From positions 186,001 through 250,000 of IMG/VR virus record IMGVR_UViG_3300042549_005931: DNA of 64,000 nt; one strand, 5' to 3'. The first letter of the stretch is position 1. The number at the start of each line of letters is the position of its first letter. A program made the position numbers and the translations under genes. Below the pieces are notes generated by a model, which saw only the letters and a list, made by a program, of their open reading frames with translations, was not told where the DNA came from and did no database searches. Shown here piece after piece: positions 3,474 through 30,093 of this stretch.

Positions 3474-5495
3474 ATGTCTGTAGAATTCTTCGAAGATGGT
3501 CCAACCATCAATCCAAAGAGAACCAAAAAGGGTTCAAACACACCAATTTTAGATAATTTCTCACGAGATTTAATTAAACTTGCTGAGGAAGGTAAAATTG
3601 ACCCTATTATTGGTAGGGACAAAGAAGTGAAACGAATTGCACAAATTCTATCACGTAAAAAGAAAAACAATGCGGTAATTGTTGGTGATGCCGGTGTGGG
3701 TAAAACCGCTATTGTTGAAAAATTGGCGTTAATGATTCAAAAAGGTGAATGTCCCACAGTATTGTTAGATAAACGTATTATGTCATTGGATTTAACCTCA
3801 TTGGTTGCCGGTACAAAATATCGTGGACAATTTGAGGAAAGAATCAAAGCAATTCTTACCGAATTACAAGACGCACCTAATGTTATTGTCTTTATTGACG
3901 AATTACATACTATGGTTGGTGCCGGTAATGCAAGTGGAGCTATGGATGCTGCAAATATCATGAAACCAGCACTTGCTCGTGGTGAAATGCAATGTATTGG
4001 GGCAACAACATTCGATGAATACAAAAAACATATCGAAAAAGATGGTGCATTATCTCGTAGATTTCAAAAAGTAATACTAAAAGAGCCAAGTCAAGCAGAT
4101 ACAATTGCAATTCTTAAAAATCTACAAAATTCTTACCAAGATTTTCATAAAGTAAATTATGAAGATAATGTTATTGAAACTGTAGTTAAATTAGCCGGTC
4201 GATATATCACCGATAGACAATTTCCTGATAAAGCCATTGACGTTCTTGATGAATTAGGTGCGGAAAAACGAGTTACAAGTCAAATTCCTGAAGTTATTGA
4301 AAAATTAAAGAAGGAAGTTGAGGATATTAAAGAGAAAAAACTTGACGTAGTTAAAAAACAAAATTACGAACAAGCCGCAAAACTTCGTGATGAAGAAAGA
4401 AAGGTTAATGTTAAGTTAGACGAAGAAAAGAAAAAATGGATGGATAGTCAAAAGGATAATAGAATTCCCGTTAGTATTGATGATGTTTATTCTGTAGTTT
4501 CTGAAATGACCGGTGTCCCAATCACCAAATTGGACACAAAAGAGACGGTAAATCTATTAAATATGGAAAAAACCCTATCAGCTAAGGTAATTGGTCAAGA
4601 CGAAGCCATTAGTTCAATCTCTAAAGCCATTAGACGTAATCGTGTTGGTATTAAAGACGCAAATAAACCTATCGGTTCATTCATTTTCTTGGGTTCTACG
4701 GGGGTTGGAAAGACCTTCCTTGCTAAATCCTTAGCTGAGAACCTTTTCGGTGACCCAGATAAGATTATTCGTGTCGATATGAGTGAATATATGGAACGTC
4801 ACAACGTATCTCGTTTAATTGGTTCTCCTCCGGGATATATTGGACATGATGAAGGAGGTCAATTGACTGAAAAAGTGAAAAATAACCCATTTTCTGTGAT
4901 TTTATTTGATGAAATTGAGAAAGCACATAAAGATGTGTTCAATATCTTACTTCAAATCTTAGATGAAGGTCATTTAACCGATTCTTTTGGTCGAAAAGTT
5001 AATTTTACCAACTGTTTAATCATTATGACTTCAAATGTTGGAGCTAAAAAGGTTTCAGAGTTTGGTGGAGGTGTTGGTTTTACCACCTCATCATCAGAAA
5101 CCCAAAAATATGAGGTTAAAAAGTCCATGATTCAAAAATCATTGAAACAACAATTCAATCCAGAGTTCTTAAATCGTATTGATGACATAGTTTTGTTCAA
5201 TTCATTGAATGATGAAACATTAAAACGTATTGTTAATGTAGAATTAGGTAAATTGAACTCGAGATTAATTGAAAAGAGTTATAAAATCACATTCGAACAA
5301 AGTGTTATTGACCAAATCTTTAACCTTAACACCCAAGAAGAATATGGTGCTCGTCCTTTGAAACGTATTATTCAAAATCTTTGTGAAGATTTCTTGAGTG
5401 AACAAATTTTAATGGGTAACATAGTAGAAAACGAAGAAATTTCAATAATTTTTGAAGAAAATGAATTAAAAATTTCTAAAAATAGTGATAAATAA
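3474..5495 (+). CDS. clpC: ClpC-like AAA+ chaperone/protease ATPase lacking the N-terminal Clp-repeat domain
   Basis: two Walker A motifs (GDAGVGKT, GSTGVGKT), KYRGQFEER pore loop, UVR coil QNYEQAAKLRDEE, GVGF loop. Confidence 0.9.
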   Translation: MSVEFFEDGPTINPKRTKKGSNTPILDNFSRDLIKLAEEGKIDPIIGRDKEVKRIAQILSRKKKNNAVIVGDAGVGKTAIVEKLALMIQKGECPTVLLDKRIMSLDLTSLVAGTKYRGQFEERIKAILTELQDAPNVIVFIDELHTMVGAGNASGAMDAANIMKPALARGEMQCIGATTFDEYKKHIEKDGALSRRFQKVILKEPSQADTIAILKNLQNSYQDFHKVNYEDNVIETVVKLAGRYITDRQFPDKAIDVLDELGAEKRVTSQIPEVIEKLKKEVEDIKEKKLDVVKKQNYEQAAKLRDEERKVNVKLDEEKKKWMDSQKDNRIPVSIDDVYSVVSEMTGVPITKLDTKETVNLLNMEKTLSAKVIGQDEAISSISKAIRRNRVGIKDANKPIGSFIFLGSTGVGKTFLAKSLAENLFGDPDKIIRVDMSEYMERHNVSRLIGSPPGYIGHDEGGQLTEKVKNNPFSVILFDEIEKAHKDVFNILLQILDEGHLTDSFGRKVNFTNCLIIMTSNVGAKKVSEFGGGVGFTTSSSETQKYEVKKSMIQKSLKQQFNPEFLNRIDDIVLFNSLNDETLKRIVNVELGKLNSRLIEKSYKITFEQSVIDQIFNLNTQEEYGARPLKRIIQNLCEDFLSEQILMGNIVENEEISIIFEENELKISKNSDK

Positions 5496-5880: not shown

Positions 5881-6462
5881 ATGAAAACACTATTAATATC
5901 ACTTTTTTTATTTTTATTCATTCCTTCAAGGAAGGATGTTAAAATCTTGTTTATAGGAGATAGTCTAACCTGTTATTCAAATGGTTGGCAACATACCGTA
6001 GCAAAAGGTATGGGTATGGGATATGTTAATATTTCAAAGGTCGGTAAAAGAACCGATTGGATGTTAAAAACTTTGGAAAATTATTTAGAAAACGGACCTC
6101 ATCACAATACTTTAATAATATACGGAGGAATTAATGATTCATTTGCCAGAACAAGTGAAATAACTACAATCAATAATATACAATCAATGGTTAACTTAGG
6201 TAACCTATATGAAATGGAAGTTATTGTGATTGTTGGATATGACCCAAATAAAGTTATTAAAAAAACCGTATACACAGACAATGTAACTAAAGTGTGTCGT
6301 GATAGGTATGTCAAATTACAAAACAAAATGCAAGAAAGATTATTGGGATGTAAAATCATACCCATGGATACCACGGTAACATATCAAGATTCAGGAGACG
6401 GTATTCATCTTAAATCCTCAGGACATAAAAAGTTCTCAAGTTGGGTGTTAAAAAATTTATAA
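5881..6462 (+). CDS. SGNH/GDSL hydrolase
   Basis: GDSL, GGIND and DGIH blocks; N-terminal signal. Confidence 0.85.
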   Translation: MKTLLISLFLFLFIPSRKDVKILFIGDSLTCYSNGWQHTVAKGMGMGYVNISKVGKRTDWMLKTLENYLENGPHHNTLIIYGGINDSFARTSEITTINNIQSMVNLGNLYEMEVIVIVGYDPNKVIKKTVYTDNVTKVCRDRYVKLQNKMQERLLGCKIIPMDTTVTYQDSGDGIHLKSSGHKKFSSWVLKNL

Positions 6463-6463
6463 T

Positions 6464-6883
6464 ATGTCAAAGATTAGAATTTATTTAGATGACATTAGAA
6501 CACCTATTGAAGATGGGTGGACCGTTGTTAGAAATTATGAACAATTTGTTAGTACCGTAATGTACAACGGATTGGAAAATATTAATATCATTTCGTTAGA
6601 CCACGATTTAGGAGATACGGCCATGAAAGAATGGCACACTAATGTTTATCATAACTATAAATTAGATTATAATAACATTACCGAAAAAACCGGTATGGAT
6701 TGTGCCAAATGGTTAGTTGAACAATGGATGGACGGTCAACCGGTAGTTGATGTGTTCACACATTCTGCAAACGCTATCGGTAGTGCCAATATCATGGGTT
6801 ACATCAACAATTATAGACACATCAATAGATTACCCCAAAACTGTGTAAGAGTACGTATAGAACATACAACCATAAATTTATAA
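6464..6883 (+). CDS. cyclic-phosphate-processing receiver-like domain protein
   Basis: IYLDDIR, SLDHDLG, HSAN..G motifs. Confidence 0.75.
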   Translation: MSKIRIYLDDIRTPIEDGWTVVRNYEQFVSTVMYNGLENINIISLDHDLGDTAMKEWHTNVYHNYKLDYNNITEKTGMDCAKWLVEQWMDGQPVVDVFTHSANAIGSANIMGYINNYRHINRLPQNCVRVRIEHTTINL

Positions 6884-17242: not shown

Positions 17243-17337
17243 ATTCTATAAATATGTGTAAAATCATTTTAAGTACATCACATTTATGTTATATCACATA
17301 TCTCCAAAAAATATTTTAAATTATTTTTAATACTTTC

Positions 17338-17368
17338 TTGATTTTGTCAATACTTATATATACATTTG
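17338..17368 (+). promoter_or_regulatory. Bacteroidota-type promoter for leader 1/tRNA array 1
   Basis: TTG at 17338-17340 and TACATTTG (TAnnTTTG -7 element) at 17361-17368. Confidence 0.65.
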
Positions 17369-17390
17369 TAAAAATTAAATAAAACATTCA

Positions 17391-17492
17391 ATGAAACGCT
17401 TTACACATATCACGTTTACTACATTCGCAACCAAATGGTGTGCGATGGGTGAGATTGGTATGTCTCGAGGTTTCGATTGTAATATAGGATAG
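17391..17492 (+). CDS. attenuator leader peptide 1 (MKRFTHITFTTFATKWCAMGEIGMSRGFDCNIG)
   Basis: 33-codon ORF between promoter and terminator; codons match tRNA array 1; ends GGA TAG TAA. Confidence 0.8.
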   Translation: MKRFTHITFTTFATKWCAMGEIGMSRGFDCNIG

Positions 17493-17520
17493 TAAGAAAG
17501 TTTACATTAATATAATATAA

Positions 17521-17556
17521 GAACCTCGGGACAAAATCTCGGGGTTTTTTGTTTTT
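17521..17556 (+). terminator. attenuator terminator abutting tRNA-Ala
   Basis: GAACCTCGGGA-CAAAA-TCTCGGGGTT + T tract; 5' arm complementary to 17463-17473. Confidence 0.85.
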
Positions 17557-17626
17557 GGGCCGGATGTCAATGGCTGACCATCTGATTTGCAATCAGAATG
17601 AAAGGGTTCGATTCCCTACGTGTCCA
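17557..17626 (+). tRNA. tRNA-Ala(TGC)
   Basis: TCTGA-TTTGCAA-TCAGA anticodon arm, G3-U70, bulged acceptor stem. Confidence 0.8.
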
Positions 17627-17659
17627 CAGTATTAGTTCTTTGAAATCGTGGGTAAAATT

Positions 17660-17732
17660 GTCTATGTGGCGCAACGGTTAGCGCTCCGACCTGATACGTC
17701 GGCGGTTGGTGGTTCGAATCCATCCATAGACA
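17660..17732 (+). tRNA. tRNA-Ile(GAT)
   Basis: cloverleaf, loop CTGATAC. Confidence 0.92.
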
Positions 17733-17737
17733 CATTT

Positions 17738-17810
17738 GGAGACGTAGCTCAGTTGGTAGAGCACCGGCCTGAAGAGCCGGGTGTCGGTGGTTCAAATCCA
17801 CCCGTCTCCA
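17738..17810 (+). tRNA. tRNA-Phe(GAA)
   Basis: cloverleaf, loop CTGAAGA. Confidence 0.95.
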
Positions 17811-17816
17811 CATTTT

Positions 17817-17890
17817 GACCTCTTAGCTCAGTTGGTTAGAGCACCTCACTTTTAATGAGGGAGTCCCGCGTTCGAGTCGCGGAGGGGTCA
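17817..17890 (+). tRNA. tRNA-Lys(TTT)
   Basis: cloverleaf, loop CTTTTAA. Confidence 0.95.
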
Positions 17891-17895
17891 CACAC

Positions 17896-17967
17896 GCGTC
17901 TATGGTGTAATTGGCAGCATACCGGTCTCCAAAACCGGCGGTCGAGAATCGTTGTCTCGTGGACGTG
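17896..17967 (+). tRNA. tRNA-Trp(CCA)
   Basis: loop CTCCAAA; atypical T-loop ATCGTTG. Confidence 0.85.
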
Positions 17968-17972
17968 CAAAT

Positions 17973-18044
17973 AGTTCTATGGTGTAATGGATAGCACCTG
18001 ACACTACGGATGTCAAAGTTGGAGTTCGAGTCTCTATGGAACTA
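17973..18044 (+). tRNA. tRNA-Arg(ACG)
   Basis: cloverleaf, loop CTACGGA. Confidence 0.92.
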
Positions 18045-18052
18045 CGTTAAAA

Positions 18053-18127
18053 GGTGAATTGGCTGAGTGGTCAAAAGCAACGGTCTGCAAAACCGTACAA
18101 TCGTTGGTTCAAATCCAACATTCACCT
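18053..18127 (+). tRNA. tRNA-Cys(GCA)
   Basis: cloverleaf, loop CTGCAAA, U73. Confidence 0.92.
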
Positions 18128-18128
18128 C

Positions 18129-18203
18129 GGTGACTGTCGTCTAATGGTAGGACAAAGGTTTGTGGTGCCTTCAATAAGAGTTCGATTCTCTTCAGTCACA
18201 CCA
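18129..18203 (+). tRNA. tRNA-His(GTG)
   Basis: loop TTGTGGT, encoded G-1 and CCA. Confidence 0.9.
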
Positions 18204-18208
18204 TATAT

Positions 18209-18276
18209 TGCGGGGAGGAGGGTTCCCAACCAGTCTCATAAGCTGTGTTTTCCGGTTTCGACTACCGGCCCCGCAA
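18209..18276 (+). tRNA. tRNA-Met(CAT), atypical
   Basis: TGCGGGG/CCCCGCA acceptor, loop CTCATAA, shortened D-arm. Confidence 0.7.
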
Positions 18277-18340
18277 CAAAATATTTTAGATTTTTTTTAC
18301 ATATATTTTTTTATTTAAAAAACTTCTTTTATATTTGTCA

Positions 18341-18477
18341 TAAGATAATGGTTTTCACCATTCAACGGATGTCGACAATCCAGAGTGGAACCTGAAAACA
18401 TAACCCTCTGCCGAGCGCTCATAAAACTGAAGAAGCAGTCAAGAATGGAACGAAACGGGTATTCCATCATTATCTTA
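18341..18477 (+). ncRNA. unidentified structured RNA
   Basis: 12-bp closing stem TAAGATAATGGT/ATCATTATCTTA, internal stems, TATATTTG promoter just upstream. Confidence 0.55.
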
Positions 18478-18480
18478 CAG

Positions 18481-18554
18481 GCTCCCTTAGCTCAGTTGGC
18501 CGGAGCGCCTCACTTGTAATGAGGATGTCGGCGGTTCGAATCCGTCAGGGAGCT
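18481..18554 (+). tRNA. tRNA-Thr(TGT)
   Basis: cloverleaf, loop CTTGTAA. Confidence 0.95.
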
Positions 18555-18560
18555 CAACAA

Positions 18561-18701
18561 GGTTCTATAGTTGTTTAGGTCGCCCCTTAAACAATGAGTG
18601 GGTTAATGATGGTTTAGTATTACTACCCGATATTCTAGATGAAGCGTGGTAAGTGATTAAACAAGTAATTAACGAGATGGGTTCGATTCCCATTAGAGCC
18701 T
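18561..18701 (+). ncRNA. tRNA-like RNA (acceptor + T-arm, expanded interior)
   Basis: GGTTCTA/TAGAGCC acceptor, ATGGG-TTCGATT-CCCAT T-arm, no canonical anticodon arm. Confidence 0.6.
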
Positions 18702-18750
18702 CAAAACATAGGATTAATTACCCTATGTATGGATGGTTCGAAACATCCGA

Positions 18751-18824
18751 TTGATTATGGTGTAATGGTGCACGGAGACCGTAATTGGAGCTCAGGATTA
18801 AGGTTCAAGTCCTTTTTAATCAGC
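18751..18824 (+). pseudogene. degenerate tRNA
   Basis: TTGATTA/TAATCAG acceptor, TGGTGTAATGG D-arm, GGTTCAAGTCC T-arm, broken anticodon arm. Confidence 0.5.
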
Positions 18825-18829
18825 AACAA

Positions 18830-19215
18830 GTGACGACTGTGGTGTAACCCCACGGTATATGAAATCCAAAATGGTCCTGTTGAAGCCGGAATAGTCATAC
18901 AGGTCAGGAGAGAGTTAGTATAAGTTGGGAGTAATTAACCAATTGACGAAAACTAATCACCAAGAAATTGGTCATGATGTCCAACGGGGATAATAAACTT
19001 GTTAATTTGTTAATTTAAGTTCTGGTGGGTTTTATTAAATAATTTTGTTTCATTTTAAACAATTTTAGTTATAAGGAAGTTGAAGAATTGTAACCACCAA
19101 CATAGAAATTAGATTAACAAAGTTTAATTACGGGAGGTGTCTCGTATAACTAATACAATCCCCTAATAGGGACTGATGTAAGATTAAGATTCTTACGACA
19201 CCGAACGTGATTGGA
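18830..19215 (+). ncRNA. unidentified ~390-nt structured RNA
   Basis: nested long-range stems, no ORF. Confidence 0.45.
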
Positions 19216-19224
19216 TTATTAACC

Positions 19225-19299
19225 GCCCCTATCGACAAGCGGTTAAGTCACGTCCCTTTCACGGATGAGTCACGGGTTCGATTCCCGTTGGGGGTACCA
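19225..19299 (+). tRNA. tRNA-Glu(TTC)
   Basis: cloverleaf, loop CTTTCAC, CCA encoded. Confidence 0.95.
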
Positions 19300-19310
19300 A
19301 AAGTTTTATT

Positions 19311-19559
19311 ATGTTAGAACAAATATTGGAGTACTTTGGGGAAGAAGAATTTCTTAAAGCGGACGGATTCGATGAAGCCGTTATTGGTGTTGAAGAAAGT
19401 TCGATGAGACTAATCTATTCAGTTACCAAATGTCTTGAGATATTGGTTACCAATGAAGAGATGTCATTAGAAGAAGCTATTGAGTATTTTGACTTTAATG
19501 TTAGAAGTGCTTATGTAGGTGATAAAACACCCATTTGGTGTGAGGATGGTTTTATGTAA
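19311..19559 (+). CDS. hypothetical phage protein
   Basis: ADGFDEAVIG...EAIEYFDFNV...AYVG motif typical of large phages. Confidence 0.7.
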   Translation: MLEQILEYFGEEEFLKADGFDEAVIGVEESSMRLIYSVTKCLEILVTNEEMSLEEAIEYFDFNVRSAYVGDKTPIWCEDGFM

Positions 19560-19560
19560 T

Positions 19561-19749
19561 ATGAAAAAAATAATATATCTACTAATTGTAATTTTTACAT
19601 TATCCGGTTGTTTTACTTATGTAAGAGAAACTGGTAGATTTTACCCACGTAATAGAAATTTACAACCAAACCATAGAATGGGTATTAACGGTTACCATTT
19701 AAGAAATCAATATTATTTTAGACATATTCAACCATTAAAAAAAAGATAA
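19561..19749 (+). CDS. small lipoprotein
   Basis: MKKIIYLLIVIFTLSGC lipobox from ATG 19561. Confidence 0.6.
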   Translation: MKKIIYLLIVIFTLSGCFTYVRETGRFYPRNRNLQPNHRMGINGYHLRNQYYFRHIQPLKKR

Positions 19750-19791
19750 AGGATTGATTTTCAACATTTTTATATTTATAATAAAAAAGAT

Positions 19792-20139
19792 ATGTTAGAC
19801 TTAAAAGAACTTTTAATTATGCTAGGATTGGCGGTTGGTGGACCATCACACAGTCAAGATATGACTTTTTATCGACAAAAATTATCTAATGAAATGGTTT
19901 TAGAACAAAAACTAAAAGAAGAAATTAAAGCCTTAGAATATAGAAAACTTTGGGACGATGTAAATCAAAAAGAAAATGCAGATTTTGCAGTTAGGTGGTT
20001 TAAAGATAAAAAATCGGAAGATAAATTAGGTAGTTCAAAAAAAGATTTAAATAACACAAGAAAAAAAATAAAAGTATTAAAAAATATCCTTGAAAAAGAT
20101 TCATTAGATAAGGTAGTACCTCAAACTCAGGTACTTTAA
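19792..20139 (+). CDS. hypothetical coiled-coil protein
   Basis: ORF preceded by TATTTATA. Confidence 0.6.
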   Translation: MLDLKELLIMLGLAVGGPSHSQDMTFYRQKLSNEMVLEQKLKEEIKALEYRKLWDDVNQKENADFAVRWFKDKKSEDKLGSSKKDLNNTRKKIKVLKNILEKDSLDKVVPQTQVL

Positions 20140-20178
20140 TTTATTTTCGGATATTTATATATTATAAAAACAAAAATT

Positions 20179-20601
20179 ATGAAAAAATTATTATTTATTT
20201 TCGCGTTAGTTCTTGGTTGTACTTTTAGTTCAACTGCTCAAGAATTGTTTGGTTCCGCAACTAACAAAGGTATGGACGGATACTTAACTGGTGGTTACAT
20301 CAAAAAAGGATGGGGTGCCTATGTTGGTTTTAGATATGATGCTGACCCTATGGTTAGTACTAAAACAGGTAGCTTTGATAAAACTATGAAATTTGGTGTT
20401 ATTCGTATGTTTGCGAGTGAGAAAATTATGATGGGTGTGGGAATCCAACCTGTCGATAATGTTAACAAACCAAATGTTTTTATTGGTTACGCACCATTAA
20501 AATCGGAAGGATTGAAGATATGGGTTATTGGTAATTTAGTAGGTTCTAATTTTACACCAGGTCTTGGTTTAACTTATAAATTATCACAAATTAATTTTTA
20601 A
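20179..20601 (+). CDS. small outer-membrane beta-barrel-like protein
   Basis: signal peptide, Gly/aromatic beta strands, terminal Phe. Confidence 0.55.
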   Translation: MKKLLFIFALVLGCTFSSTAQELFGSATNKGMDGYLTGGYIKKGWGAYVGFRYDADPMVSTKTGSFDKTMKFGVIRMFASEKIMMGVGIQPVDNVNKPNVFIGYAPLKSEGLKIWVIGNLVGSNFTPGLGLTYKLSQINF

Positions 20602-20627
20602 AAATTTACTATTAAATAAAACTTTTG

Positions 20628-20635
20628 TATATTTG
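20628..20635 (+). promoter_or_regulatory. Bacteroidota-type -7 promoter element for leader 2
   Basis: TATATTTG 18 nt before leader ATG. Confidence 0.6.
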
Positions 20636-20653
20636 TATATACTTATTAGAAAA

Positions 20654-20758
20654 ATGAAGAATTTATTAACAACAATATCGCTTAGTTTGAACCCGTCATA
20701 TAATGATAATGGGAGAGGCGTGCAGACGTTAATAAGTTCGGACCAAATATTAGGATAG
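20654..20758 (+). CDS. attenuator leader peptide 2 (MKNLLTTISLSLNPSYNDNGRGVQTLISSDQILG)
   Basis: 34-codon ORF; codons match tRNA array 2; ends GGA TAG TAA like leader 1. Confidence 0.8.
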   Translation: MKNLLTTISLSLNPSYNDNGRGVQTLISSDQILG

Positions 20759-20781
20759 TAAATAAAAAAACTAAAATAAAG

Positions 20782-20822
20782 AAACCCGAACGACTTAAAA
20801 AATTGTTCGGGTTTTTTGTTTT
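20782..20822 (+). terminator. attenuator terminator before tRNA array 2
   Basis: AAACCCGAACGA/TTGTTCGGGTTT + T tract; 5' arm complementary to GTTCGG at 20736-20741. Confidence 0.85.
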
Positions 20823-20902
20823 AATGAAACTTTTACATATATTTGTAAAACAGTTCATCACATAGGTGGTGAAAAATGTTCTTTGACATTGTGAGAAAAA
20901 AT

Positions 20903-20987
20903 GCTCGGGTGGTGTAATGGTAGCCACGAAGGACTTAAAATCCTTTGGACAGAAATGTCCGTGCCGGTTCGAGTCCGGCCCCGAGTA
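20903..20987 (+). tRNA. tRNA-Leu(TAA)
   Basis: type II cloverleaf, loop CTTAAAA. Confidence 0.95.
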
Positions 20988-20989
20988 CA

Positions 20990-21099
20990 AATGTAATGAC
21001 TTAGAAATAAGTGACGGAACAGACGCTATGTATGAAATGGAAACTTTCGAAACTCGTATAAAAGAGTGAATTAGACACAAACCGTACAGACATTACATT
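20990..21099 (+). ncRNA. unidentified structured RNA between tRNAs
   Basis: AATGTAATG/CATTACATT closing stem, ACTTA-GAAA-TAAGT hairpin, ACGG/CCGT. Confidence 0.5.
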
Positions 21100-21104
21100 A
21101 AATT

Positions 21105-21178
21105 GGTTCCGTAGCTCAGCTGGATAGAGCAACTCTCTTCTAAAGAGTAGGTCTTTGGTTCGAATCCAAACGGAATCA
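21105..21178 (+). tRNA. tRNA-Arg(TCT)
   Basis: cloverleaf, loop CTTCTAA. Confidence 0.95.
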
Positions 21179-21183
21179 CATAT

Positions 21184-21258
21184 AGAGTAATGGGCTAATT
21201 GGTAAGCCGCTACATTTGGGTTGTAGACATCATGGGGGTTCGAGTCCCTCTTATTCTA
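21184..21258 (+). tRNA. tRNA-Pro(TGG)
   Basis: cloverleaf, loop TTTGGGT. Confidence 0.88.
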
Positions 21259-21266
21259 CATTAAAT

Positions 21267-21351
21267 GGTTTCGTTGCCGTAGTGGCCGAACGGTCCAGAC
21301 TGTTAATCTGGTGAGTAACATCCATCGTAGGTTCGAATCCTACCGAGACCG
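21267..21351 (+). tRNA. tRNA-Asn(GTT) with long variable arm
   Basis: loop CTGTTAA, G73, ~15-nt variable region. Confidence 0.85.
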
Positions 21352-21403
21352 CTTGACTTTTTCGAATATTTTATGTATTTATTGTTAACTAAAAAAATTA
21401 ATA

Positions 21404-21943
21404 ATGGGTAAGTACTTCGAAAAAATTATAGATTTAAGAAATCAAGGAAAAACATATAAGGAAATATGTGTTGAATTAAACTGTGCAATGTCAACAGTGT
21501 CATATCACTGTAAGTTAAATAAATTGGGTGGCCACACTGATAGACTGACAGATGAAGATAAGGTAGAACTTCAAAAATTATACAATGAAGTTGGCAGTTT
21601 AAAAAAAGTGGCTAAATTAAAAGGTTATGCATTTCAAACTGTTCAAAAATATGTAACAATAAAAAATAGAACAAAAAAAGTTTCAAAATCCGAAGCGGTA
21701 ATAGAATGGAGAAAAAGAACTAAGATAAAATTAGTTGAATATAAAGGTGGTAAATGTCAAATTTGTGATTACAATAAATCATTCAATGCATTACATTTCC
21801 ATCATATTAACCCAAATGAAAAAGATTTTTCAATATCAGGTAAATCATTATCATTTGACAAATTAAAAACTGAGGTTGATAAATGTATTTTAGTATGTTC
21901 AAATTGTCATTCTGAAATACATGAAGGTTTAATAACATTATAA
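21404..21943 (+). CDS. HTH + HNH homing-endonuclease-like protein
   Basis: CQIC...FHHINP...C.LVCSNCHSEIH; N-terminal HTH motifs. Confidence 0.85.
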   Translation: MGKYFEKIIDLRNQGKTYKEICVELNCAMSTVSYHCKLNKLGGHTDRLTDEDKVELQKLYNEVGSLKKVAKLKGYAFQTVQKYVTIKNRTKKVSKSEAVIEWRKRTKIKLVEYKGGKCQICDYNKSFNALHFHHINPNEKDFSISGKSLSFDKLKTEVDKCILVCSNCHSEIHEGLITL

Positions 21944-21944
21944 C

Positions 21945-22020
21945 ACCCTTATGGACAAACGGCAAAGTCACTGGTTTTAGGCACCAGGTTTTATAGGTTC
22001 GAATCCTATTAGGGGTACCA
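21945..22020 (+). tRNA. tRNA-Leu(TAG) with short variable loop
   Basis: loop TTTAGGC, 5-nt variable loop, CCA encoded. Confidence 0.85.
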
Positions 22021-22037
22021 ACTAAATTTTTAATATT

Positions 22038-22157
22038 ATGGCAGTTACATCAAAAAGAGTTGCAAAGAAAGCTAGTAAAGCTTTAAGTAGTAAAAAAACG
22101 AGTAAAACAACTAAGACTCTTGCAGGTAGTGCATTGAGACAAAGAAGAAAAAAATAG
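22038..22157 (+). CDS. small basic protein (MAVTSKRVAKKASKALSSKKTSKTTKTLAGSALRQRRKK)
   Basis: 39-aa ORF between tRNAs; not in ORF track. Confidence 0.7.
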   Translation: MAVTSKRVAKKASKALSSKKTSKTTKTLAGSALRQRRKK

Positions 22158-22162
22158 TAATT

Positions 22163-22245
22163 GGGAGTGTTGAGCAACGGTTGCTTAGCAGACTGTAAAT
22201 CTGTGGTCTACGACATTGGCGGTTCGAATCCGTCCACTCCCACCA
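22163..22245 (+). tRNA. tRNA-Tyr(GTA)
   Basis: type II, loop CTGTAAA, CCA encoded. Confidence 0.92.
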
Positions 22246-22258
22246 AAACAAAAAAACT

Positions 22259-22819
22259 ATGGAATTCATTTACAGAAGAGAAAACGTATTATCAAAAGAA
22301 CAATGTGATGAGATAATACAAAAGTTTGAAGAGTCTGATTTTAAATTGGCAGGTATTACCGCATCAGGTGTTAACGAATCTATTAAAAAATCTACAGACC
22401 TTACATTTCATCATAATACTTTAGATGATGAAAAAATTAATAATCTTTGGGGTGATACTGTTCGTAAAATTGTTCGTGATTTAAATTATCACATGAACAA
22501 ATACAAGGAGGAAAATGAATACTTGAAATTTTTTAAAATAGAGATGGATTCATTCAACATTCAAAAGTACGAACCAAATGGTGGATTTTATACTTGGCAT
22601 TGTGAAACCATTCATTGTTTAGATAGAGTTACCGCTTGGATGATATATCTTAATGATGTTGATGATGGTGGTACTGAGTTTATGAAACAAAAACACACGG
22701 AGAAAGCTGAAGCGGGTAAGTTAATTATATGGCCAGCAGATTGGACACATGCACATCGAGGTCAGGTTAGCACTACCAAAACAAAATATATTTTAACAGG
22801 TTGGTTTAGTCAAAAGTAA
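22259..22819 (+). CDS. 2OG-Fe(II) oxygenase (prolyl-hydroxylase-like)
   Basis: WHCE, YLNDVDDGGTEF, THAHRG, KYILTGW. Confidence 0.85.
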   Translation: MEFIYRRENVLSKEQCDEIIQKFEESDFKLAGITASGVNESIKKSTDLTFHHNTLDDEKINNLWGDTVRKIVRDLNYHMNKYKEENEYLKFFKIEMDSFNIQKYEPNGGFYTWHCETIHCLDRVTAWMIYLNDVDDGGTEFMKQKHTEKAEAGKLIIWPADWTHAHRGQVSTTKTKYILTGWFSQK

Positions 22820-22820
22820 T

Positions 22821-23387
22821 ATGGAATTCATTTATAGAAAAGAAAATGCATTATCATTAGATTTATGTAATGATATAATTACTAAATTTAATGAATCTAA
22901 TTTACCTGAACCGGGTGTAGTAGGAAAAGGTGTAGTTGAAGAAATAAAAAAATCGATAGATTTATCTTTCCATGCCGATTCATTAAACACTAAAGAATTA
23001 CAAGATATATGGGGTCCACCATTGGGTGAAAGTATTCCAATTATTAATTCATGTGTTCAAGAATATTGTGATAAATTTGAATATTTGAAAATGATGAGTT
23101 CATTTAAAATGGAAGCTTTTAATATTCAAAAGTATGAACCGGGTGGTGGATTTTATACTTGGCATTGTGAAGCTACTTTAAAAATAAGACGTGTTGTTGT
23201 TTGGATGGTTTATTTAAACGATGTTGACGATGGAGGAACCGAATTTATACATCAAAACCATATCGAAAAAGCGGAAGCTGGTAAATTATTGTTGTGGCCG
23301 GTTGATTGGACACATGCACATAGAGGACAAATTAGTTATACCAAAACAAAATATATTTTAACAGGTTGGTATTCTATACCCCAATAA
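22821..23387 (+). CDS. 2OG-Fe(II) oxygenase, tandem paralog
   Basis: same motifs, high identity to previous gene. Confidence 0.85.
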   Translation: MEFIYRKENALSLDLCNDIITKFNESNLPEPGVVGKGVVEEIKKSIDLSFHADSLNTKELQDIWGPPLGESIPIINSCVQEYCDKFEYLKMMSSFKMEAFNIQKYEPGGGFYTWHCEATLKIRRVVVWMVYLNDVDDGGTEFIHQNHIEKAEAGKLLLWPVDWTHAHRGQISYTKTKYILTGWYSIPQ

Positions 23388-23434
23388 TCGTTGAAATATA
23401 CGATAACAGATTTTATCGTTAGATTAAACGATAT

Positions 23435-23508
23435 GGACTTATAGCTCAGATGGTTAGAGCAGGTCGCTCATAACGACAAGGTCACAGGTTCGAGCCCTGT
23501 TTGGTCCA
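23435..23508 (+). tRNA. tRNA-Ile2(CAT, lysidine type; reads ATA)
   Basis: loop CTCATAA; GGACTTATAGCTCAG body resembles Ile2 rather than Met. Confidence 0.75.
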
Positions 23509-23588
23509 CAAAAAGTGTCTTGGTATGCTCTGACGAAAGTCAACGACAAGGTCTCGGTAGGCAGAACGCGTCTGATTCTACCCAAAAC

Positions 23589-23662
23589 AGAAGATTAGCT
23601 CAGTTGGTTAGAGCATTTGGTTTACATCCAAAGGGTCATAGGTTCGAATCCTATATCTTCTA
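23589..23662 (+). tRNA. tRNA-Val(TAC)
   Basis: cloverleaf, loop TTTACAT. Confidence 0.92.
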
Positions 23663-23729
23663 CAGAAAACTGAGATAGGATATTATTGATATGGATACAA
23701 TTCCTGATAATATTGCTACTCAGTTGATT

Positions 23730-23805
23730 GCGAAAGTAGCTCAGTTGGTAGAGCATTACCTTGCCAAGGTAAGGGTCGCGAGTTCGAATCTCGTTTTTCG
23801 CTCCA
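23730..23805 (+). tRNA. tRNA-Gly(GCC)
   Basis: cloverleaf, loop TTGCCAA, CCA encoded. Confidence 0.95.
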
Positions 23806-23919
23806 TAAGGAGCTCCCGCTTTAAGGTGAAGGACACGCGGGCGAATAACTTTCAGGGTAAGTTGTAAAAGAACTCGAAACCTTAAGTCTAGTGTGGGAGA
23901 GACTCCTACCCACACACAA

Positions 23920-23991
23920 GCGAATATAGCACAGCGGTTAGTGCTCTGGTCTTCCAAACCGGAAACGACAGTTCGAATCTGTCTATTCGCT
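23920..23991 (+). tRNA. tRNA-Gly(TCC)
   Basis: cloverleaf, loop CTTCCAA. Confidence 0.93.
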
Positions 23992-24000
23992 CTATTAATC

Positions 24001-24073
24001 GGGATTGAGGTCAAACGGTTAAGATGTCGCCCTGTCACGGCGCACGGAGCGGGTTCAACTCCCGTCAGTCCCG
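24001..24073 (+). tRNA. tRNA-Asp(GTC)
   Basis: cloverleaf, loop CTGTCAC. Confidence 0.9.
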
Positions 24074-24076
24074 CAT

Positions 24077-24147
24077 TCCTCTATGGTGTAACGGTAACAC
24101 AACTGTTTTTGGTGCAGTTATTCATGGTTCGAATCCATGTAGGGGGT
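24077..24147 (+). tRNA. tRNA-Gln(TTG)
   Basis: cloverleaf, loop TTTTGGT. Confidence 0.92.
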
Positions 24148-24150
24148 CAA

Positions 24151-24347
24151 TGAGTAAGAGATACTCAGCAGTCTTTAATCCAAGACTCATTTAAAAATGG
24201 ATAGGATAATAGACTGGACATCCTTAAACGCCAGTCTCTTGGGAATAAAGCTGGAAAATCGTCCTTGCTCCCAGTAACGATTGACTTTTTAATGAGGGAT
24301 GCCTCGCAGGTTTTTCAAACAGCTAAATAACCGAAATAACTACTCAC
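24151..24347 (+). ncRNA. unidentified ~200-nt structured RNA
   Basis: TGAGTA/TACTCA ends, GACTGG/CCAGTC hairpin, potential pseudoknot AATCGT/ACGATT. Confidence 0.55.
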
Positions 24348-24372
24348 ATATAATCTCAATGTGGGGAAACAA

Positions 24373-24454
24373 GGAGAGGTGGACAATGGTCGTTGAGCGG
24401 TCTTGAAAACCGTCGGGTGTAAAAGCTTTGCAGGTTCGAATCCTGTCCTCTCCG
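24373..24454 (+). tRNA. tRNA-Ser(TGA)
   Basis: type II, loop CTTGAAA. Confidence 0.9.
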
Positions 24455-24511
24455 CACCCTACAATCCCATGTCGGCTCGAGTGGGTGAGAGTATAGGTAT
24501 CGGGCCCTTAT

Positions 24512-24600
24512 AGAGGGTTGGGTGAGTGGCTTAAACCAGCAGTTTGCTAAACTGCGGATGGGGTTAAACCTGTCCACCGGTTCGAATCCGGTATCCTCTA
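24512..24600 (+). tRNA. tRNA-Ser(GCT)
   Basis: type II, loop TTGCTAA. Confidence 0.93.
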
Positions 24601-24614
24601 CACTATTTATATGA

Positions 24615-26737: not shown

Positions 26738-26835
26738 TTTAATATATTTTGTTTTTTAAATTTTTTTTCGTAAGTTTGTAAAAGAAATCACAACGGTGGT
26801 TTTTTAAAAGAGAAAGTTCTTTGAATTAAAGATAT

Positions 26836-27603
26836 CGGCGGTCTATAGTCGTTAAATAAACTACGAAAGTAGGATAAAGTGAATCGAAAGTTATAAACGG
26901 TTTGCGGTTTCGGTAACGGAACTCGAGTAGACAAGCAAGACATCATCTGTCCTTAGTTCCGAGGGTAACACTGTAGGAAATGGATAGGTGACTTGGCAAT
27001 CTGAGTTGTCAAGTTGAGGTGGGAACACTAATAAGAGTAACTTGTGGAACTTTACAAGAAATGGGACCTCCAATCTCACTATTGTGTTGTTCAATATCAT
27101 GGGTACCTTAAAATCGAAAGGTATGGTGAAGTACGAGTGGTGTCGTTATCATCCTTAATAAAACCCTACCAAGAGTTTTATTTTGAAGGTGTCCAAAAGT
27201 ATGGAGGTTGGGAGACTTCAGAGAGTAGTTTAGTATTCTGTTGTTCAAAAGATAATGGAGCTGGCAGACGGGCCACTACTTTCAAGATTCGGAAACAAAA
27301 AACCCTTACAATGGTGTAAATCAAAAAAAAGGAAAAGTGCTCGTCAGTCGTTGGAAACAGGTGACTACATAGTCGTGAGATGTTCACGGCCATAGAAGAC
27401 CCCAAGTCCGATATGATTTTTGAGAAAAGTTCTATATAGTGCGGCGGTATTGTATAGAGAAGAGTAACGAGAGAGTATTCAACGACTTAAGGATTGGTTA
27501 ATCTAATTGACCGTCACTGATTGGTACAGTTCAAAAGACTGTGGATAAGAGAAGAATCAATAATGTCTCTAAAGTCAATCACAAAATGGTGTAATCTCAG
27601 CCA
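26836..27603 (+). ncRNA. giant structured ncRNA, GOLLD-like
   Basis: ~770-nt purine-rich non-coding tract with many hairpins, own TAAGTTTG promoter and boxA-like site, near tRNA arrays of a phage. Confidence 0.6.
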
Positions 27604-29468: not shown

Positions 29469-29870
29469 GGGGATGACCGGCATTTGACTGGCGTTTGTAT
29501 TGTAAGTGGGCACGTAGTCAGACTTCATCTATGACTTAAATAAACGGTGGAAACTTTTAGACGGCAACGTTTACAAAAACATGGAAATTGCGGGTATTCT
29601 TGCAACTTCTAACGTAGCAGTAGCCTAAGGCAAACCTACAACGGGTCGACTGACATATAACCTAGGAACAGAAGTCTTCAAAGTGTGATACCACTCAGAG
29701 TGTCAAAGGTCTCGTTCAGAGTGCTACCTTAAGTGAACTCGACACAGTTATTGGTAACGATGTCAAAATAGGAACCAATTATTTGTCTATTGAGAACTAA
29801 TAGAATAAACGTGTAGTCCATTTATTATTCGGCGGACAGGACCAGGGTTCGAATCCCTGCATCTCCACCA
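29469..29870 (+). ncRNA. ssrA: tmRNA
   Basis: GGGGATGA...GAC 5' end, GGTTCGAATCCC...CTCCACCA 3' end, tag ORF GNVYKNMEIAGILATSNVAVA* at 29563-29628. Confidence 0.93.
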
Positions 29871-30093
29871 AAACAAAAACCCATCATTTGATGGGTTTTT
29901 TTATATCTTTATGTTCTCAGGTCCTATAACGACCAAAAGGTCCGAAGACCCTTTTGTCGAGATTTAAGAACACCTCCTTTTCGTTTATAAAAGTTATCGT
30001 CTAACGGCGACCAAACCAATCAGACTCTCTTATAAATATCGCAAAAAAAAGAGTTAGACGATTTATCTAACTCTTTTAATGAAAAAAATTCAA

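Follow-up and report, generated by a model that had tools for sequence, protein, structure and literature searches.

Leader reading frames matched to downstream tRNA genes suggest ribosome-mediated attenuation of two tRNA arrays in an uncultured phage

We show that two arrays of tRNA genes in an uncultured phage (269 kb, with AT-rich DNA) are each preceded by a short leader ORF whose codons match the tRNAs encoded downstream, and that this match of the leaders to their arrays is real and far from chance. The DNA analysed here, termed the window, is a stretch of 64,000 nucleotides (positions 186,001 to 250,000 of IMG/VR record IMGVR_UViG_3300042549_005931). We consider the best reading of this arrangement to be transcription attenuation mediated by the ribosome, in which each leader senses the supply of precisely the tRNAs that its array encodes, and we assign this reading a probability of about 0.75; it is inferred from sequence alone and there are no expression data. 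The attenuator reading is supported by the existence of a twin leader with a complementary codon set, by covariation between leaders and tRNAs, by conserved and partly covarying RNA pairings, and by an independent replicate of the design in Cellulophaga phage phi4:1. What we show in silico comprises the ORFs, their codon–tRNA match and covariation, three helices with their conservation or covariation, a tight geometry and the phi4:1 replicate.

Leader codons and the tRNAs encoded downstream

Both arrays lie on the + strand of the window (Table 1), whose genes include those for an HNH endonuclease, 2OG-Fe(II) oxygenases, a protease and glycosyltransferases; array 2 is interrupted by one HNH endonuclease gene and two 2OG-Fe(II) oxygenase genes. 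ARAGORN found 13 tRNAs in array 2, and a tRNA-Asp(GTC) at 24001-24073 was added by Rfam and relaxed ARAGORN to give 14. The Ala-TGC, Asp-GTC and odd CAT tRNAs were detected at relaxed thresholds only. A GOLLD RNA and a tmRNA are located downstream of both arrays in the window.

Table 1. Positions of leaders, switch elements, promoter-like sites and tRNA arrays in the window, and composition of the phi4:1 cassettes
Feature	Position	Strand	Description
Promoter-like site, leader 1	17336-17368	+	-33-like TCTTG (17336-17340), 20-nt spacer, -7 box TACATTTG (17361-17368)
Leader 1 ORF	17391-17492	+	33 codons and stop; peptide MKRFTHITFTTFATKWCAMGEIGMSRGFDCNIG
Region 1, attenuator 1	17392-17397	+	UGAAAC; pairs with GUUUCG (17470-17475); from fold
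Region 2, attenuator 1	17461-17475	+	17461-17472 (UGUCUCGAGGUU) complementary to terminator 5' arm (antiterminator); 17470-17475 pairs with region 1
Terminator 1	17519-17550	+	Region 3 AACCUCGGGACA (17522-17533); region 4 UCUCGGGGUU (17537-17546); then U-tract
tRNA array 1	17557-19299	+	Ala-TGC (weak), Ile-GAT, Phe, Lys, Trp, Arg-ACG, Cys, His, atypical CAT tRNA at 18209-18277 (weak), Thr-TGT, Glu-TTC
Promoter-like site, leader 2	20605-20635	+	-33-like TTTA (20605-20608), 19-nt spacer, -7 box TATATTTG (20628-20635)
Leader 2 ORF	20654-20758	+	34 codons and stop; ATG at 20654, TAG at 20756-20758; peptide MKNLLTTISLSLNPSYNDNGRGVQTLISSDQILG
Region 1, attenuator 2	20659-20670	+	GAAUUUAUUAAC; last base of codon 2 into codon 6; from fold
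Region 2, attenuator 2	20728-20741	+	20728-20739 pairs with region 1; 20736-20741 (GUUCGG) pairs with terminator CCGAAC
Terminator 2	20782-20817	+	5' arm AAACCCGAAC (region 3, 20786-20791); 3' arm GUUCGGG (20805-20811); U-tract 20812-20817
Second promoter-like site, 3' of terminator 2	20815-20886	+	TTTG (20815-20818), 19 nt, TATATTTG (20838-20845); 3' of these a small hairpin (20854-20873), then a conserved GTTCTTTGA box (20878-20886)
tRNA array 2	20903-24601	+	Leu-TAA, Arg-TCT, Pro, Asn (86 nt), Leu-TAG, Tyr, CAT (Ile2-like), Val, Gly-GCC, Gly-TCC, Asp (weak), Gln, Ser-TGA, Ser-GCT
phi4:1 cassette A			Leader MKIQRLHLQELEQPIISGGTGV; then Pro, Glu, Gln, His, Leu, Leu, Arg(ACG)
phi4:1 cassette B			Leader VQLTKTGITVIDKTKGARAYLGDTVIG; then Ala, Lys, Ile, Gly, Met, Asp, Thr, Val, Arg(TCT), Met
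phi4:1 cassette C	L084:5369-5467		Leader MKTNYCTYNNSNWSFSYDTGSVCTLGSDGLIG; then Tyr, Ser(GCT), Asn, Trp, Phe

An earlier, first-pass annotation of leader 2 had claimed that all 14 array-2 tRNAs have a cognate codon by codon 24, and that 29 codons match with only the start Met, one Lys and three Thr codons as exceptions. Both claims held. The second corresponds to 29 of 33 internal codons, and the first (14/14) is conditional on two decoding assumptions, namely that the CAT tRNA at 23435 reads ATA (Ile2-like) and that the single U34 tRNA-Leu(TAG) reads CTT. Decoding rules were lenient: U34 was counted as cognate to every codon of a four-codon box, and CAT as cognate to ATG as well as ATA. Chance was modelled with codons drawn according to usage in the phage itself (43 long ORFs with 13,905 codons in total), under which the array-2 tRNAs decode 57% of phage codons; for leader 2 this model gave a probability of 1e-4 for at least 29 of 33 matches and of 0.002 for full coverage.

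Leader 1 covers 10/10 of the array-1 tRNAs (own-usage model, p = 0.002), with 22 of 32 codons cognate to array 1 (p = 1.5e-3) and codons 2-18, the first 17 internal ones, cognate without exception (p = 2.7e-7). The leader-by-array split (22/8 vs 4/29; Fisher p = 7.5e-7) indicates that the code is partitioned between the leaders as it is between the arrays. An empirical null was provided by the 105 ATG-initiated ORFs of 28-40 codons in the six frames of the window, among which full coverage of array 1 was found in leader 1 only, and leader 2 alone covered 14/14 and alone exceeded 85% matched codons for array 2. Leaders 1 and 2 were the only members of this set to cover their own array in full, and each had the highest matched fraction for it.

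Related viral contigs were gathered via two flanking proteins, and two DNA patterns were scanned in IMG/VR. We obtained 46 distinct leader sequences of 30-36 codons from about 60 related viral contigs, with the ATG and frame conserved, which fall into two families (typically MRQFTHTMSFTICSKWADER... in family 1 and MKNINNILTSTRPLNNGNGYGVQPL... in family 2). In both families a terminator always follows the leader and is itself followed by tRNAs. The C-terminal third of the leaders is poorly conserved except for region 2, an element of the RNA pairings described below. The leaders also have a conserved N-terminal peptide, a feature that a functional-peptide view would predict as well.

Leader codons shift with the downstream tRNA set, for example in Pro/Asn/Gln-type arrays and where Tyr, His, Arg-CGN, Asp or Ser tRNAs have been gained or lost. 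Arrays starting Pro-Asn-Trp-Leu(TAG)-Gln have a leader with MRQLTNMTSFSNQLNWNEQP in place of MRQFTHTMSFTICSKWADER, those that add His have a leader with a His codon, and those with Tyr and Arg(ACG) have a leader with TAT and CGT (MRQITYTTSPMNQQNWNDRS). The tRNAs Asp and Ser(TGA) have relocated from array 1 to array 2 in the window clade, where the first 20 codons of leader 1 include none for D or S and leader 2 has gained GAT and TCG/TCA. Across the 18 distinct family 1 leaders with complete arrays, the codon was present in 197 of the 206 cells in which the tRNA was present, and absent in 179 of the 226 cells in which it was absent. Clean splits (given as tRNA present with codon/present without/absent with/absent without) were found for Ile, Lys and Cys (12/0/0/6 each), Arg-CGN (14/0/0/4), Pro (6/0/0/12), Tyr (2/0/0/16) and Ser-TCN (16/0/0/2), and represent several different partitions. 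The mean match of a leader was 0.83 to its own array vs 0.61 to swapped arrays (permutation p = 5e-5).

A confounder of these counts is that the sequences are phylogenetically related, such that the large cell-count p-values treat them as more independent than they are. We therefore also connected 33 leaders in a minimum spanning tree and contrasted nearest neighbours, and the codon count tracked the change in tRNA in the same direction in 26 contrasts and in the opposite direction in 7 (family 1, 19 vs 5, p = 0.003; family 2, 7 vs 2, p = 0.09). Thr was the main outlier, opposing the trend in family 1, and leaders L176 and L178 are partial counter-examples in that they retain Phe and Lys codons without those tRNAs. 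Relatives without leaders have strongly reduced, almost lost, arrays.

Searches with megablast and blastn found no homologues of the leaders in 50,697 phage records. The only database match of the region was an odd tRNA that is common to Cellulophaga phage phi4:1, and this match led us to that phage, which is cultured and unrelated to the window phage. Three cassettes, each composed of a promoter-like sequence, a short ORF, a terminator and tRNAs, partition the tRNAs of phi4:1 (Table 1). Their leaders cover 7/7, 9/9 and 5/5 of their own arrays (cassettes A, B and C), the 3x3 table of leaders by sub-arrays departs from independence (chi-square p = 1e-6), the leader of cassette A contains 11 cognate codons in a row, and region 2 of cassette C has an 8-nt exact complement of the terminator 5' arm. 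An annotated phi4:1 ORF, Phi4113_076 (L084:5715-5816), was rejected as a leader, with 6/32 matching codons and no terminator; cassette C lies upstream of it.

A search for diverged relatives of the phi4:1 cassettes returned only phi4:1 and phi17:2 (99% identical). No ORF listing downstream tRNAs (a checklist ORF) with a terminator was found before the tRNA runs of T5, mycobacteriophage Catera, Vibrio phage Ceto, Salmonella phage PVP-SE1 or Bacteroides phage crAss001. These negatives are weak because the generic scanner was crude, truncating the window's own arrays and missing leader 1. Scanning of genome contigs with the family 1 pattern gave 37 chance matches, none with an ORF and terminator, and hence neither a bacterial copy nor a clue to the host.

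Alternative pairings, leader geometry and promoter-like sites

Three alternative pairings, namely 1:2, 2:3 and 3:4 followed by a U-tract, are kept in both leader families. RNAalifold recovered 1:2 and 3:4 in both; compensatory changes were present for 1:2 in both families and for 2:3 in family 1 only, and were also found for 3:4.

For attenuator 1, RNAalifold gave a 6-bp 1:2 helix with a compensatory G-C to A-U change in the window clade, and the terminator stem contains double compensatory changes in seven sequences. The full leader 1 RNA folds into the 1:2 hairpin and the terminator (-49.7 kcal/mol, z = -4.8), and when the terminator 3' arm is removed 17461-17472 pairs with 17522-17533 over 12 bp. 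Across 25 distinct family 1 sequences, 91% of cells in the 2:3 helix (7-12 bp) were paired, against 13-50% for slid controls, and one pair, 19:72, is AU in 12 and GC in 9 sequences. Region 1 of this family overlaps leader codons 1-3.

For attenuator 2, the first-pass annotation had proposed that TTTGAAC pairs with GTTCGGA and GTTCGG with CCGAAC. The latter pairing held, being real and conserved, and forms an antiterminator of 6 bp in the window and 7 bp in most relatives. The former failed, with 64% of cells pairing and no covariation; three of its pairs are broken in 7-8 of 11 sequences, and we reject TTTGAAC as region 1 in favour of GAAUUUAUUAAC. The 8-pair core of this corrected 1:2 helix is paired in 95.5% of cells (11 sequences; slid controls 18-50%) and has AU to UA double changes in 4 sequences. 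In family 2, region 1 overlaps leader codons 2-6, and 94.8% of cells in the 2:3 helix are paired; the lack of covariation in this helix is attributed to its columns being almost invariant. The truncated fold of leader 2 was no better than shuffles (z = -1.0). Terminator 2 is a GC-rich hairpin with a stem at about 20782-20811. The antiterminator is exclusive with the terminator in leader 1, and only weakly so in leader 2. The wider claim of a classic 1:2/2:3/3:4 switch with codons that list the downstream tRNAs is thus supported in its core, with region 1 corrected.

The geometry of the leaders is near-fixed. Region 2 starts at nt 71-74 in family 1 and nt 83-89 in family 2, the stop codon follows region 2 by 11-25 nt, most often by 14 or 17 nt, and in all leaders a further 24-31 nt separate the stop from the terminator. 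The codons of the putative checklist end about 4-5 codons short of region 2, a gap to be expected if region 2 has to stay accessible while the ribosome is stalled. The main non-cognate codons, AGA CAA in family 1 and AAG in family 2, overlap region 1; the AAG forms the Lys exception of leader 2 and borders region 1 on the 5' side, its G being the first base of that region. Leader 2 has three Thr codons and yet Thr-TGT lies in array 1 of the window; in many relatives Thr-TGT belongs to array 2, which makes these codons look like a relic. G-ending codons in U34 four-fold boxes make up 34% in leaders vs 11% in phage genes. No consistent relation between codon order and tRNA gene order was found in the leaders inspected.

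The promoter-like arrangement before leader 1 is kept in relatives and has a -7 box that we take to be of the Bacteroidota TAnnTTTG type, as in Bacteroides and Flavobacterium promoters, with no transcription start mapped. The site before leader 2 is similarly kept. The terminator and the second TATATTTG that had been reported after leader 2 are both present, and the two caveats attached to them, a short antiterminator and a promoter-like site beyond the terminator, both stand, with the post-terminator site found in all relatives whether leader 2 is present or absent. In relatives without the leader, terminator 2 sits directly 3' of an upstream 140-aa gene. Unlike attenuator 2, attenuator 1 has no promoter between its terminator and its array, and promoter-like boxes also occur within array 1 (18331-18338). 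Partial expression of the arrays without read-through is possible because promoter-like sites follow terminator 2 and lie inside array 1.

The attenuation model and its rivals

In the proposed model, each array would be controlled by an attenuator consisting of a promoter, a leader ORF of 30-36 codons and an intrinsic terminator, and the first ~20 leader codons would act as a checklist with at least one codon per downstream tRNA. When this checklist is read without delay, region 2 would either be covered or, in the wake of the ribosome, pair with region 1, and with region 2 unavailable the 3:4 terminator and its U-tract would form and transcription would stop. When any of the listed aminoacyl-tRNAs is scarce, the ribosome would stall upstream of region 2, leaving region 2 free to pair with the terminator 5' arm (2:3) and RNA polymerase free to enter the tRNA genes. 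The predicted outcome is a demand-driven and self-limiting synthesis of phage tRNAs. Region 1 is indeed placed where a translating or stalled ribosome would interfere with 1:2; the block of this pairing by a ribosome stalled at codons 9-21 is an inference. Translation of the leaders, ribosome stalling and regulated read-through under limiting charged tRNA are likewise inferred. The host is presumed to belong to the Bacteroidota, in which transcription–translation coupling is not established, and to that extent the mechanism depends on inference.

The case for leader 2 is weaker than that for leader 1. The leader 2 switch is probably leaky or auxiliary because of the 6-bp antiterminator and the conserved promoter-like site between the terminator and the first tRNA, and it is possible that leader 2 adds an inducible component to a basal promoter.

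The rival that survives best, which we nevertheless consider unlikely, is that leader 2 is weak or vestigial, that array 2 is expressed mainly from the post-terminator site, and that the terminator belongs primarily to the 140-aa gene. This view allows that leader 2 evolved, or once served, as a tRNA sensor, with little regulated read-through. In its favour, relatives without leader 2 retain the terminator after the 140-aa gene, together with TATATTTG and the GTTCTTTGA box before tRNA-Leu; the antiterminator of leader 2 has only the 6 bp and z-score of -1.0 given above; and the three Thr codons are unmatched by array 2. Against it, the frame, regions 1 and 2 and the spacing of leader 2 are kept in all relatives with a large array 2, the clade in which tRNAs for Asp and Ser-TCN entered array 2 is precisely the one in which leader 2 acquired the corresponding codons, and compensatory changes occur in its 1:2 helix.

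A second rival is that stalling does sense tRNA, with an output that consists of Rho-dependent termination, precursor processing or stability, or a trans-acting leader sRNA. Codon–tRNA covariation demands only translation-dependent sensing, no explanation is at hand for the conserved GTTCTTTGA box close to tRNA 5' ends, and attenuator-derived sRNAs exist elsewhere, e.g. rnTrpL (PMC7968998). We judge this alternative very unlikely, however, given a canonical GC-rich hairpin and U-tract at a fixed distance past every leader and the complementarity, with covariation, of region 2 to the terminator 5' arm.

A third rival, that the leaders are ordinary small phage genes encoding micropeptides with their own promoter and terminator and that the match in composition arose through coincidence or linkage, draws on the conserved N-terminal peptide of each family and on the commonness of small ORFs in phage tRNA regions such as that of T5, but is rendered very improbable by the low window-level probabilities of the codon match, amino-acid replacements that follow tRNA gain and loss in several partitions, poor conservation of the C-terminal third outside region 2, the absence of any Pfam or NCBIfam match for the leader peptides, the threefold occurrence of the same rule in the unrelated phage phi4:1 and the absence of the checklist rule from the small ORFs of T5, Catera, Ceto and PVP-SE1.

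Known systems and implications for phage tRNA genes

One of the known classes closest to the proposed attenuators is that of the amino-acid operon attenuators of Proteobacteria (trp, his, pheA and leu, and the multivalent thr and ilvGMEDA/ilvBN). Textbook examples of this class share with the phage leaders a promoter, a short ORF with regulatory codons and a 3:4 terminator with U-tract, a region 1 in or beside the ORF, and a region 2 that pairs with either 1 or 3. In the classical systems, stalling at hungry codons selects 2:3, and the same logic is proposed here. The phage leaders depart from this class in their targets, which are tRNA genes and not the genes for amino-acid biosynthetic enzymes or aminoacyl-tRNA synthetases that are regulated by classical attenuators. 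They also list 10-14 codon classes, mostly once or twice, whereas classical leaders contain runs of one to three amino acids; they are phage-borne, with a Bacteroidota-type promoter; and their ORF extends over region 2 and stops about 14-17 nt past it. Attenuation of pheST by the pheM leader of E. coli resembles the phage systems in that a gene of the translation apparatus is preceded by a leader peptide that reports charged tRNA; it differs in being chromosomal, in sensing one amino acid and in having an aminoacyl-tRNA synthetase, with no tRNA genes, as target.

T-box riboswitches similarly use the status of a specific tRNA to choose between terminator and antiterminator before translation-related genes. 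Unlike the phage leaders, they use a specifier codon and the T-box sequence to bind uncharged tRNA directly, without an ORF or ribosome, whereas the phage leaders have a conserved frame and are read, by inference, as translated. No T-box or other cis-regulatory family was detected by Rfam at E <= 1 on 17300-21000, and neither leader matched a known leader or riboswitch in Rfam at gathering thresholds or at E <= 1. The tRNA clusters of T4, T5, KVP40-like phages, Bxz1/Catera and crAss001 resemble the window in having many tRNAs, homing endonucleases and small ORFs, and such clusters of large phages often lie beside a tmRNA or other stable RNAs; unlike in the window, no short ORF and terminator that spell out the downstream tRNAs were found in the five control phages. 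In the full-text literature searched, we found no tRNA genes, of phages or otherwise, described as being under attenuator control. The class of mechanism, leader-peptide attenuation, is thus a classical one, and what we infer to be new is the tRNA-gene target, the checklist design of 10-14 classes and the phage context.

A bolder reading is that the cassettes constitute a homeostat for phage tRNA supply, in which every array would have a checklist sensor to itself and replacement tRNAs would be switched on only when the host pool for a listed codon collapses. We regard this as rather more likely to be wrong than right. Such a collapse could be caused by host shut-off, by a mismatch in codon usage or by cleavage by host anticodon nucleases, and it is conceivable that the sensor would then serve a counter-defence function. 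As a corollary, the leaders may be a key to the decoding of odd phage tRNAs, possible examples being the CAT tRNA and ATA, the 86-nt long-arm tRNA and Asn codons, and a phi4:1 pseudo-tRNA and Cys codons.

Phage tRNA genes are usually seen either as constitutively expressed aids to codon usage or as a source of decoys for defences that cleave tRNAs. The control of their expression is essentially unknown territory. If the attenuation reading is correct, this would be the first case known to us of leader-peptide attenuation controlling tRNA genes, and the most multivalent attenuator known, with up to 14 codon classes monitored by one ORF. It would also supply a sequence-only search rule for any virome (a short ORF and terminator, with codons that equal the downstream anticodons), an internal check on which tRNAs share one transcription unit, and a route for inferring the decoding identity of atypical tRNAs. 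As the same design is present in the cultured Cellulophaga phages phi4:1 and phi17:2, the idea is directly testable in a laboratory system that is not pathogenic. Finally, it would mean that phages meter their production of tRNAs by demand.

Further elements of array 1 and a recurrent box

Two further elements lie within tRNA array 1, and a third sequence there resembles a tRNA (coordinates in the table). The stretch of ~400 nt is kept in relatives, including four contigs that have lost leader 1, the short checklist ORF before this array (L021, L023, L043 and L045), where it is preceded by a TATATTTG box. It folds better than its shuffles (z = -2.8) and gave no match in Rfam, and may represent an undescribed structured RNA. 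For the 140-nt element the z value was -2.9. The tRNA-like sequence, which was called by neither ARAGORN nor Rfam, could be a tRNA carrying a large insertion.

The window contains four copies of the GTTCTTTGA(C/A)AT box where 1.06 would be expected, and the position of the box is unchanged in relatives. Copies are located ~16 nt 5' of tRNA-Ile and of tRNA-Leu, with another upstream of the GOLLD region. This box might mark where transcripts are processed or where they begin, or it might bind a protein.

Features in and downstream of the two tRNA arrays of the window phage (window positions)
Feature	Position	Strand	Remarks
GTTCTTTGA(C/A)AT box	17635-17643, 20878-20886, 26816-26824	+	third copy upstream of GOLLD RNA
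CAT tRNA, class 1	18209-18277	+	array 1; atypical, degenerate D-arm
Promoter-like TATATTTG	18331-18338	+	within array 1
140-nt element	18339-18480	+	after TATATTTG, immediately 5' of tRNA-Thr; long-range stem closes ends
tRNA-like sequence, ~144 nt	18560-18703	+	matching acceptor-stem halves (GGTTCTA ... TAGAGCC); T-arm present
~400-nt stretch	18826-19224	+	before tRNA-Glu
tRNA with Asn anticodon (GTT), 86 nt	21267-21352	+	long variable arm
HTH-HNH homing endonuclease gene	21404-21943	+	directly 3' of 86-nt Asn tRNA
Two tandem 2OG-Fe(II) oxygenase genes	22259-22819, 22821-23387	+	PHROG 61; embedded in array 2
CAT tRNA, class 3	23435-23509	+	array 2; Ile2-like
Promoter-like box TAAGTTTG	26771-26778	+	upstream of GOLLD RNA
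GOLLD RNA	27221-27603	+	Rfam RF02032, 280 bits
tmRNA, phage-encoded	29469-29870	+	Rfam 87 bits; ARAGORN tag peptide GNVYKNMEIAGILATSNVAVA
Terminator-like hairpin	29875-29900		bidirectional; after tmRNA

GOLLD RNA and tmRNA

The GOLLD RNA is positioned downstream of both tRNA arrays and is kept in four relatives (L005, L052, L060 and L064). The TAAGTTTG and GTTCTTTGA boxes ahead of it fall in the interval 26771-26835. One of these relatives, L052, also carries a tmRNA.

CAT-anticodon tRNAs

The CAT-anticodon tRNAs of this phage group fall into three classes, the first of which was not detected by Rfam even at E <= 1. Class 2, found in relatives, is initiator-like, with C1 opposite A72. Leaders of family 1 (leader 1 and its counterparts) contain internal ATG codons and have a checklist without ATA, and those of family 2 (leader 2 and its counterparts) have two or three ATA codons and lack internal ATG.

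The long-armed Asn tRNA and Cellulophaga phage phi4:1

In the unrelated cultured phage phi4:1 (L084; accession KT962245), the sites considered were 2663-2731, 3587-3706, 5369-5467 and 6451-6524. Leaders A and C of its three leader-terminator-tRNA cassettes have no GenBank annotation. For leader B, GenBank lists the hypothetical protein Phi4113_075, which starts from an upstream TTG that falls within the promoter-like repeat. Leader C contains two Cys codons, and the 'pseudo' tRNA (6451-6524) has a GCA-like anticodon loop.

The 86-nt Asn tRNA of array 2 shows 92% identity to a 'tRNA-OTHER/pseudo' of phi4:1. At the same site, L005 and other relatives carry an Asn tRNA of normal form and 72 nt, and in some relatives (L124, L132 and L176) the anticodon GTT is replaced by ATT. 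Asn codons are abundant in the leaders of both the window phage and phi4:1, which suggests that the odd 86-nt tRNA is functional.
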